From positions 126,843 to 190,842 of the forward strand of contig JAWQFM010000015.1 of assembly GCA_033442325.1 (NCBI GenBank): a stretch of 64,000 nt of DNA, given 5' to 3'. Position 1 is the stretch's first letter. Every line of letters starts with the position of its first letter. The notes beneath the pieces are model-generated. The model was not told where the DNA came from and did no database searches. It worked only from the letters and a program-made list of their open reading frames with translations. Source of the DNA: Salpingoeca rosetta. Its lineage: Eukaryota; Protista; Choanoflagellata. The translations under genes and the position numbers were made by a program. This document shows, piece by piece, positions 30,839 to 36,750 of the stretch.

Positions 30839-33800
30839 ATGGACCCGTCGCTGGATATGGTTGTGGCGGACGCGGTGCTGTTTGGTCGGCAGCACGTGCA
30901 GCGAGATGAGGGGGACGTGTGCTTTGTCTGCCCGCGCACGGAGCAGGAACAAGGCCACGGGACAGTAGACACAGCAGATCTGGTCACGTATGGGCAAGTG
31001 CGCGCGGCCGTGCTGTGCTTGCAGCAGCAAATGGAGCAAATCGAGCACGTGGGCGATGCCAGTGACCTCGAAGGCACAGCCGTGGTGTTGGCCTGCAGCT
31101 GCCCGCTGACGCTGGCCGTCTCGTTCCTGGCACTGAACAAGGCCAAGGCCATCTGCGTCCCCGTGGACCCAAGCATCTCTGCAGAGCAGCTCACATCGTA
31201 CCTCAGCGAGTACCGTCCAAGGCTGGTGCTGTGTGATGTCGCTGTGGCCGCCACAATCTCGTCAGCGTGGATGGAAGCCATCGCTGCACACCACGCGTGC
31301 CTGTGCAGCGTACACTGCGATTCACGCAACGCAAGCGCACCTGCCCTGGAGCATGTGCTCATCGCTGACACTGCGAACAGCAATCAAGCCATCACAGGTG
31401 TTGGCAACGGAAGTGGGGACACCGACAGCAGCAAGCAGCACAAACACAGCGAGTTCATCACCACCACCAAAAACGACGGCTGCACCGAGACCACCAGCAC
31501 CGGTGCAAACGACGTCATGAAGCAAGTAGCGTTCCCCAAGGACGCGTGCTTGTTCCTGCGAACGAGTGGCACGACCGGAGCACAGAAGACGGTGGTCCTC
31601 ACCCACCACGGGATCCTGAGCGGCCTCGGCATGATCCAGAACACGCTGCAGTTGTCAACACAAGACGTGGGCATCAACGTGCTTCCGCTCTTCCACTGGC
31701 ACGGGCTTGGCGTCAACTGCCTGTGCACGCTCTACGCTGGTGCACGCGTCGTTCTCGCGCCCGTGTTTCCCGGCCCACAGCAGTTTCTGCAGCTTGCACG
31801 TGTCCACGGTGTGACGTGGTACTCGGCTGTGCCCGCCTTCCACACCCCGCTCGCGCACTGGCTGGACAAGGCTGCAGCTGCTTCCGCTGCACACGCAGAC
31901 GCAGGCGATACGCAACCGCTTAAACAACACTCTAACCAACTTCAAGCTAAGCAACAGCAGCAGCAGCAGCATGGGTGTCAGCCTGTGGCTCCACTTCGTA
32001 TCCGGTTTGCGCGCAACTGCTCTGCTGCGCTGTCGCCTTCCGTCGCCAGATTGCTCGAGAAACACCTCCACTGCACCGTTCTCACCACATATGCCATGAC
32101 AGAGTGCCTTCCCATCTGCAGCAACCCGCTCCCACCGCGCCACCAGTGTTGCGGTGCCGGTGACGAAGACGGCAGATCACATGATGGCTGCGATGACTGT
32201 GACAGCGACGCTGATCGTAGCAGCAGCGGCAGCAGTGGTGTTGATGATGTCATACCTTCGCAGCATGATGTAACCACGGTTGGCCCGCCCGCCGGGCCTC
32301 AGGTGGCAATTATGGTCGATGGTTATGATGGTGATGGTGGTGGTGGGGAGGTGCTGACGCAGGCGCCGGGCGTGCTTGGTGAAGTGGTGGTTCGTGGGCC
32401 CTGTGTTGCCTCCTACCTCGTCTCAAAGGACAGAGGTGAGCGTTATTTGTGGCATGTGGCGTGTGAATTTGCACAGTGGTCCGTTCTTCACATGTGATCA
32501 CCATCACCATCACCATCACACACACTCACACACACACACACACACACACACTCACACACGCACGCACACACGCACACACACACTCACTTACACACTCACA
32601 CACTCGCTCACTTACGCACAAACCCGCCCTGTCGTTTGTGCGCGTTATTCTGTTTCCACGGATCAGATCCCAATCTCACGGCGTTTACGGCGAGCGGGTG
32701 GTTTCGCACTGGTGATTTGGGCCAGTTCACAAAATCCGGACATGTGCGCCTCTGCGGTCGTCTCAAACACATCATCAACCGCGCCGGCGAAACGCTGTCC
32801 CCGCTCCAGGTATGTTCGTGTGTGTGTGTGTGTGTGTGTGTGTGTGTGTGTGTGTGTGTGTGTGTGTGTGTGTGTGTGTGTGTGTGTGTGTGTGTGTGTG
32901 TGTGTGTGTGTGTGTGTGTGTGTTTCCGGTCCTCACCATCGCCGCCACCGCCGCGATTGTCAGATTGAGCACGCGGTGCATGCTGAGATCGGCCTGCCTG
33001 CCCTCGCATTCCCGCTGCCACACGCGACGCTGGGAGAAGCTGTGGCTGTTGGTATTGAAACGAAACTGGCGCACACGTCTGCACAGCACGGTGCGTGCAG
33101 CAATAGCGGTGGCATGTGTTGTTGTTGTCGTCGTTGTTGTAGTTGTTGTGGTAGTAGTTGTTGTTGTTGTCGTAGTCGTCGTTGTGGTTGTACTCGTAGT
33201 CGTGGTTGTTGTTGTTGTTGTTGTTGTTGTTGTTGTTGTTGTTGTTGTTGTTGTTGTTGTTGTTGTTGTTGTTTAAGTTGTTGTTGTTGTTGTTTAAGTT
33301 GTTGTTGTTGTTGTTGTTGTTGTTGTTGTTGTTGTTGTTGTTGTTGTTGTTGTTCGTTCGTTCATTCGTTCGTTCGTTCGTTCGGTCTGGCTTTGCTGCT
33401 GCTGCTGCTTGAACATACGGGCATATGCACTTACACATTCACACGCGTCCACGCTTATGCGCCTGCAGACGTGCAGCAGCAGCTTGTGTCACTGGCGGTG
33501 CGAGCAAAGATGGCTGTGGCCGTGCGTGTGTTTGAGCGTGCTGCGCCATTGTGCGTCTTCTTCGTGTCTTCCTTCCCGCGAACAGCAACGGGGAAGCTGC
33601 AGAGGCAAAGTGCGGCGTACTTATGCTCTTTGTATGTGTGTCTGTGACTGTGTGTCTGTGTGTGTGTCTGTGTGTGTATGTTGGTTGATACATTCTCTTT
33701 TGTTGTTTGTCCATGATTTGCACACTGCAGAGCGTGCGTCTGTGCAAGACGTTTCAATTGTATTCATCGTCACGTGCTCACCCTCTCCCAATGACACCAA

Positions 33801-36750: not shown

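Follow-up and report, generated by a model that had tools for sequence, protein, structure and literature searches.

Analysis of a 64,000-nucleotide stretch of Salpingoeca rosetta DNA (contig JAWQFM010000015.1 of assembly GCA_033442325.1, positions 126,843 to 190,842 of the forward strand; hereafter the window, within which all positions are counted) revealed one gene of ten or more exons at 30839–36750 on the forward strand, whose product joins an adenylation (A) domain, a carrier (T) domain, a glutamine/histidine tract and an ankyrin (Ank) module. We consider it very probable that the complete architecture is A-T-(Gln tract)-seven ankyrin repeats encoded by a single gene, in a protein of about 1180 residues with the layout A-T-Ank. 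Compared with other stand-alone A-T enzymes, the protein is a conserved variant whose new part is an ankyrin docking module in the place of the release domain. With regard to function, the best explanation, on which our confidence is evenly balanced, is a stand-alone loading enzyme of the nonribosomal peptide synthetase (NRPS)-like kind, from which a docked acceptor would take the acyl group.

Gene model and assembly gap

That the domains belong to one transcript and one protein is concluded chiefly from four complete open reading frames (ORFs) derived from transcriptomes, those of S. infusionum, S. kvevrii, Stephanoeca and Didymoeca, in which A, T and Ank lie in one frame and in the same order. 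For the S. rosetta gene itself, the open frames were joined by hand into eight exons before an assembly gap and two after it, and the model was then verified by a script, according to which every exon border between 30839 and 36750 conforms to GT-AG and the phases agree on each side of the gap. The eight exons upstream of the gap encode 1032 residues and the two downstream encode 62, with the stop codon at 36748–36750. When the Barroeca orthologue P0188 was used as a tblastn query, the exons in the window were matched in collinear order, while residues 1–132 and 1036–1119 of P0188 had no match in the window. All exon junctions other than that between exons 4 and 5 lie in conserved sequence and rebuild motifs of the homologues (SKDR|DPN, SPLQ|IEHAV, LVH|AGADS, G|LHAARVGD, WAAG|QGH and GHKQ|VVAYV). 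The elements of the model are as follows.

Exon 1, 30839..32435, + strand: start codon and N-terminal body of the A domain, with two species-specific low-complexity inserts; motifs TSGTTG (P-loop), LPLFHWHG, TWYSAVP, RFARNCSAAL, YAMTECLPICSNPLP and GEVVVRG; Pfam AMP-binding, E 8.9e-39; top PDB matches oxalyl-CoA synthetases; tblastn match to P0188 residues 133–577.
Exon 2, 32667..32809, + strand: WFRTGDLG (A7) and GRLKHIINRAGE (A8 hinge); 67% identity to P0188 residues 581–628.
Exon 3, 32964..33090, + strand: C-terminal subdomain of the A domain, placed by splice sites and homologue alignment.
Exon 4, 33469..33609, + strand: end of the A domain with the catalytic lysine motif PRTATGKLQR (A10), placed by motif alignment.
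Exon 5, 34092..34291, + strand: weakly conserved linker and carrier helix 1, placed by homologue alignment.
Exon 6, 34449..35022, + strand: carrier from AGADS with helices 2–4, Gln/His tract, basic patch RRKEQRRQK and motif ESAFN.
Exon 7, 35166..35282, + strand: ankyrin repeat 1 and the start of repeat 2 (ALHWAAG).
Exon 8, 35465..35662, + strand: ankyrin repeats 2–3 and the start of repeat 4 (ALHWACRN, CLHWA), ending in phase 1; Pfam Ank, E 1.9e-14; 66% identity to P0188 residues 968–1035.
Assembly gap, 35798..36203, no strand: in an intron-like TG-rich stretch; hides one or more exons of about 257 nucleotides (nt), about 86 residues.
Exon 9, 36343..36420, + strand: first half of the last ankyrin repeat (NVNPRGETPSDLAIQAGHKQ), starting in phase 0.
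Exon 10, 36640..36750, + strand: last helix of the ankyrin module, C-terminal tail HRLPFRPAP...LEDIAAG and stop codon; the peptide of exons 9 and 10 together has 55% identity to P0188 residues 1122–1181.

The flanks of the gap are out of frame with each other, since the exon to 35662 ends in phase 1 and the exon from 36343 starts in phase 0, and the missing coding sequence must therefore have a length of 3n+2. In each of the eleven homologues compared, 84–87 ankyrin-repeat residues lie between the two flanks, corresponding to the rest of repeat 4, repeats 5–6 and the start of repeat 7. Eighty-six residues would require 257 nt, which satisfies 3n+2 and fits within the estimated run of 406 N, and the unmatched residues 1036–1119 of P0188 therefore place an exon of about this length in or beside that run. 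To judge from the homologues, the hidden exon or exons encode ankyrin repeats. The preliminary description of this gene had named a catalytic release domain concealed in the gap as a finding that would overturn its proposal; such a domain is ruled out, because the homologues carry the ankyrin residues and no other domain at this position.

The region is GC-rich and its introns are short, with (TG)n/(CA)n or (GTT)n microsatellites in nearly every intron and in the 3' flank (32500–32600, 32818–32923, 33120–33370, 35670–35797, 36480–36530 and 36770–36850). The gap begins inside one of them, which is probably why the assembly breaks at 35798. In a sequencing-run index, one group of runs held 0.40–0.42 of the sampled words of 32300–35790 and another 0.72–0.79, while the model exons make up 47% of this interval, or 40% without the Gln tract. 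The former group would fit contigs from spliced RNA, a reading to which we attach little weight, as the kind of run is only guessed.

Adenylation, carrier and ankyrin domains

The A domain is a complete member of the ANL superfamily, as had been proposed, and its Pfam AMP-binding score of 133.8 bits lies well above the cutoff of 29.9. It has every core motif (A3 TSGTTG, A5 YxxTE, A7 TGD, the A8 hinge and the A10 lysine), and these are also kept by homologues. TWYSAVP, RFARNCSAAL, YAMTE and SNPLP are likewise present in the S. rosetta protein. Throughout the family we found TSGTT, PLxHxHG, TWYSAVP, RNCSAAL, YAM(T/S)EC(L/V)PICSN, TGD, GRxKxxINRxGE and TGK. In particular, A3, A4, A5, A7, A8, A10 and the G-x-D-S motif of the carrier are kept in Barroeca, S. 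infusionum, S. kvevrii, Stephanoeca and Didymoeca as well as in the environmental proteins P0189, P0198 and P0021, while Bicosta could be aligned only across the A-domain motifs.

The nearest solved and curated relatives of this domain are the oxalyl-CoA synthetases (Arabidopsis AAE3, 5ie0/5ie3; Lathyrus LsOCS, 6qjz; oxalate--CoA ligases 8aff/8atd) and the bacterial FadD7-type ligases, with which it has LPLFHxHG, TWYxAVP, RFxRxCSA, YAMTE and SNPLP in common. The top four distinct PDB sequences were all oxalyl-CoA synthetases (6qjz at 4e-28, 5ie0 at 5e-24, 8atd and 8aff, down to 1e-18), followed by malonyl-CoA synthetases and 4-coumarate ligases. The best NCBIfam model was that of a FadD7-type acyl-CoA ligase, at 100 bits against a cutoff of 650, and the amino-acid adenylation model scored far lower. 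A word-indexed protein search with exon 1 returned distant ligases only, and no S. rosetta protein appeared in any search. Whereas oxalyl-CoA synthetases are stand-alone enzymes of about 500–545 residues that use coenzyme A (CoA), the S. rosetta protein adds a carrier and ankyrins.

According to PMC8905533, the oxalate pocket of AAE3 is formed by Val215-His216, Cys288-Ser289, Ala313-Met314, His319 and Lys500, and the conservation of Ser289 and His319 is limited to oxalyl-CoA synthetases. The pairs Cys288-Ser289 (NCSA) and Ala313-Met314 are retained in the S. rosetta A domain; however, the Val215 position is occupied by Trp (Met or Leu in relatives) and the His319 position by Pro (YAMTECLPI), the latter also in the nine homologues with an alignable A domain, in which ECLPICSNP forms a family signature. 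Oxalate is therefore not implied as the substrate, and we downgraded it as a candidate on account of this change in all members with an alignable A domain. Thus, the earlier assignment to an oxalyl-CoA-synthetase type holds with regard to the nearest solved relatives, but not with regard to the oxalate-binding histidine. The domain is best described as oxalyl-CoA-synthetase-like, with a putative substrate that is at most a small carboxylate.

The A domain contains two inserts, acidic or rich in Ser (about 31880–31990 and 32130–32290), that are missing from all homologues, and S. rosetta tolerates long low-complexity insertions within loops of the catalytic domain.

The carrier domain described earlier in the exon from 34449, with its GADS serine, was borne out: AGADS is present and the putative attachment serine is Ser741 (codon 34461–34463). 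Exon 6 alone matched positions 28–67 of the Pfam PP-binding profile (E 0.0022; 18.7 bits); the domain is divided by an intron that leaves helix 1 in exon 5, and for this reason the score falls just short of the 20.8 cutoff. The marine protein P0021 reached 38.5 bits, and PF00550 is present in the precomputed Pfam annotation of P0185, P0187 and P0189. The G, D and S of G-x-D-S are invariant in nine aligned carrier regions, including that of S. rosetta, which span both choanoflagellate orders and P0021. Furthermore, hhalign comparison of the family profile with a bona fide NRPS peptidyl carrier, the PP-binding domain of the A-T-C protein P0028, gave 90.7% probability with the serines aligned. 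AlphaFold modelled the carrier region of Didymoeca as four helices at a predicted local distance difference test (pLDDT) value of 95.3, with the invariant serine at the N-terminus of helix 2 (helix 36–50 begins at this residue), and all 50 of the 50 PDB matches listed by Foldseek were acyl or peptidyl carrier proteins, with template-modelling (TM) scores of 0.57–0.89. As modelled, the region is a carrier domain with a conserved predicted attachment serine.

Between the carrier and the ankyrins lies the Gln tract of the preliminary description, here counted as 74 Q and 3 H (34686–34916). This 77-residue tract is absent from all homologues and is therefore a species-specific insertion in the T-to-Ank linker. 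Directly before the repeats, all members carry a basic patch RKxxRR and an E(S/N)A motif; the patch resembles a nuclear-localisation signal.

LHWA occurs three times in the protein, and in exon 8 Pfam Ank scored 53.4 bits against a cutoff of 21.1 (E-value as listed above). The repeats and the recurring LHWA thus stand as first noticed, while their number, given then as at least four, rises to seven in the full module: seven ankyrin helix pairs were observed in the AlphaFold model of an orthologue, with pLDDT above 90. The module is the best-conserved part of the protein, with 47–59% identity to other choanoflagellates compared to 30–38% for the A domain. The position of the canonical TPLH is occupied by W-A in most repeats, and W218, W234, W268, W301, W334 and W360 (alignment columns) are invariant. 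The many invariant columns of the module suggest a conserved ligand. In a fold comparison with the ankyrin model, ankyrin structures ranked on top, the best-fitting ones with TM scores to the target of 0.76–0.83; the matches are generic seven-repeat peptide-binding modules, such as those of zDHHC17, FEM1 and EHMT1, and include PDB 5w7i and 3eu9.

Pfam searches of the window and of the A-T-Ank homologues detected no condensation, thioesterase or reductase domain. Nor is there room for a further domain, since in every member the sequence between T and Ank and that after Ank is short or of low complexity. The absence of a release domain, noted at the outset from the visible exons, consequently extends to the homologues and to the region equivalent to the gap. 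After the last repeat, most members (P0185, P0187, P0189, P0190, P0195, P0198 and P0027) end in PF.PA...VHQHK, whereas the PF motif persists in S. rosetta and Barroeca with a shared tail of their own, (V/K)(S/T)LE(D/E)IA(A/S)G. The C-terminus of the S. rosetta protein, ...RDDQ, carries no SKL-type peroxisomal signal.

Family members and known systems

The A-T-Ank layout was found in Barroeca monosierra, Salpingoeca infusionum, S. kvevrii, Stephanoeca diplocostata, Didymoeca costata and Bicosta minor, that is, in the four complete transcriptome ORFs and in gene models from two further choanoflagellates, which together cover both choanoflagellate orders. The closest homologues of the S. rosetta protein are without exception from choanoflagellates. 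Searched exhaustively with HMMER, 1.84 billion representatives yielded 10,858 relatives of the A domain, among the top ones several proteins of about 1000–1200 residues with A, T and Ank, and a search from the ankyrin end retrieved further members. One family member, P0021, comes from a marine metagenome, where it is encoded by an intronless gene of 63% GC on contigs of 3–6.5 kb; the ESM Atlas places it in a cluster that bears the automatic name 'Ligase/ankyrin repeat fused protein'. It is possibly of chlorophyte origin, to judge solely from a cluster label drawn from two members and from its GC content; its neighbouring gene had no match in Pfam or the Atlas.

A quick maximum-likelihood tree of A domains separated a protist clade from mostly short, partly bacterial ligases (SH-aLRT support of 99). 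Besides the A-T-Ank proteins, the protist clade comprises a diplonemid A-T protein, proteins of pelagophytes and dinoflagellates, and a fusion protein of Amoebophrya (P0025, 1356 residues), in which a related A domain is joined to a hexapeptide-repeat domain (left-handed beta-helix). Pfam names this repeat after bacterial transferases. Proteins of dinoflagellate type (P0024, P0029, P0033, P0034 and P0041; about 1080–1160 residues) have related A domains followed by C-terminal extensions of 440–490 residues without a Pfam match.

Bacterial A-T didomain proteins of about 610–690 residues (P0005, P0006, P0011, P0012 and Atlas clusters) combine a related A domain with PP-binding and likewise have no release domain; unlike the S. 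rosetta protein, they carry no ankyrin module, and they fall in the separate, mostly short-protein clade of the tree. Such proteins are common, so that the statement that this clade is normally stand-alone, made in the preliminary description, was too strong. Within the animal-choanoflagellate lineage, a comparable layout is that of animal AASDH/ACSF4-U26, a reported beta-alanine-activating enzyme in which A-T is followed by PQQ-like beta-propeller repeats. In both cases, A and T are followed by protein-interaction repeats that replace a release domain, although the C-terminus is a beta-propeller in the animal enzyme and an ankyrin module here; the likeness described is one of layout. We know of no acceptor for animal AASDH.

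Acyl units joined to docking ankyrins are also found in ACBD6 and plant ACBP1/2 (acyl-CoA-binding domain and ankyrins) and in the palmitoyltransferases zDHHC13/17 (ankyrins and DHHC). The acyl-handling domains of these proteins are unrelated to those described here, and the S. rosetta protein would generate its acyl group on the spot and hold it by a covalent bond. ACBD6 in particular combines an acyl carrier with ankyrins and docks onto N-myristoyltransferase (PMC7046191, PMC9775454).

We found no study of the A-T-ankyrin architecture in the open-access full-text literature, and a survey of animal NRPSs did not mention it. The suggestion that it may belong to an undescribed pathway agrees with this, but needs qualification in that the family is already present in databases under a name assigned automatically. 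In eukaryotes, little is understood of NRPS-like A-T proteins that lack a release domain. In this family, strictly conserved across choanoflagellates, a protein-docking module replaces that domain, which suggests that the acceptor acts in trans and might be recovered via the ankyrins. S. rosetta is genetically tractable, and the orthologues from Didymoeca (P0187) and the marine metagenome (P0021) lack the low-complexity inserts. Study of the family could reveal which acyl group is handled, and whether the animal A-T-propeller enzyme shares the docking logic.

Fate of the acyl group and genomic neighbourhood

In the mechanism that we tentatively favour, with a confidence somewhat short of even, the enzyme would load itself and pass its cargo to an acceptor docked by the ankyrins. 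The A domain would adenylate a small carboxylic acid, and the acyl group would move to the phosphopantetheine arm of the enzyme's own T domain and not to CoA. The ankyrin groove, with an invariant Trp in nearly every repeat, would dock a separate acceptor, either a trans-acting transferase or a target protein, which would take the acyl group off the arm. The chemistry of this scheme is drawn from the known roles of ANL and carrier domains, and it is reasonable to infer that the ankyrins dock a partner. Of three conceivable routes of release, we favour a trans-acting transferase docked by the ankyrins, because of the ACBD6-N-myristoyltransferase precedent and the hexapeptide-repeat fusion in Amoebophrya.

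Several points weigh against this account. The phosphopantetheinylation of Ser741, the substrate and the ankyrin partner are all predictions from sequence. The A domain belongs to a clade of CoA ligases, so that use of free CoA is possible, and the PP-binding match, below the cutoff in the window, is weak as well in Barroeca, S. kvevrii and S. infusionum. The single S. rosetta transcript is deduced from the orthologue ORFs and the collinear tblastn matches, and the junction between exons 4 and 5, in non-conserved sequence, is the least certain of the model. Finally, the A-T-Ank proteins do not form one clade in the A-domain tree, in which some proteins of 630–690 residues nest among them; we therefore make no claim on a single origin or on transfer between algae and choanoflagellates.

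If the protein were in effect an acyl-CoA ligase, the product would be released as a CoA thioester, the carrier segment would be vestigial and the ankyrins would localise or scaffold the enzyme. The nearest sequence relatives, being CoA ligases, and the weak PP-binding matches would agree with this, as would the divergent relative P0192, in which GVDE replaces the serine motif; however, P0192 also lacks a recognisable A domain, and the carrier region was modelled with high confidence as a carrier protein. Since neither the serine nor its G-x-D-S surroundings vary among the nine carrier regions aligned, we disfavour a CoA route with an idle T domain and judge this alternative unlikely. Somewhat less probable again is a self-contained protein acylase, in which the acyl group would pass directly, driven by proximity, to a Lys, a Cys or the N-terminus of an ankyrin-bound target, an E1/E2-like logic built from NRPS parts and requiring no separate transferase. 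In line with such an enzyme, no member has a release domain and the closest ankyrin folds serve protein-modifying enzymes as modules for recruiting substrates (zDHHC17, FEM1, EHMT1), but these fold matches are generic, we identified no residues that would catalyse the transfer, and the idea is purely inferential. In its boldest form, to which we give a slim chance, A-T-ankyrin would be a new kind of protein-modifying enzyme, acylating a target held in the Trp-lined groove, and this NRPS-derived counterpart of E1/E2 would have arisen in, or been acquired by, the closest unicellular relatives of animals.

We regard it as very improbable that the architecture is an artefact of the gene model, produced by two adjacent genes (one adenylating, the other carrier-ankyrin) or by a release domain lying in the gap. 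The non-conserved exon 4-5 junction and the gap length, which is an estimate, would leave room for it, but A-T-Ank occupies one frame in the transcriptome ORFs and in the intronless environmental gene, and only the 84–87 ankyrin residues are found at the gap position in all homologues. Two adjacent genes were rejected on the basis of the orthologue ORFs, and the artefact reading is largely refuted.

With regard to the surroundings of the gene, no functional context was found among its neighbours in the window. An ORF on the forward strand at 25147–26148, about 5 kb upstream and with no evident link, encodes a zinc alcohol-dehydrogenase GroES-like domain (ADH_N, 4e-26), and a second assembly gap, of 100 N, is located at 55481–55580. 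Two long ORFs on the minus strand, at 27298–29277 and 29810–30736, encode low-complexity, Ser/Pro-rich products without a Pfam match; the latter ends about 100 bp from the start codon of the A-T-Ank gene, with which it may share a bidirectional promoter.

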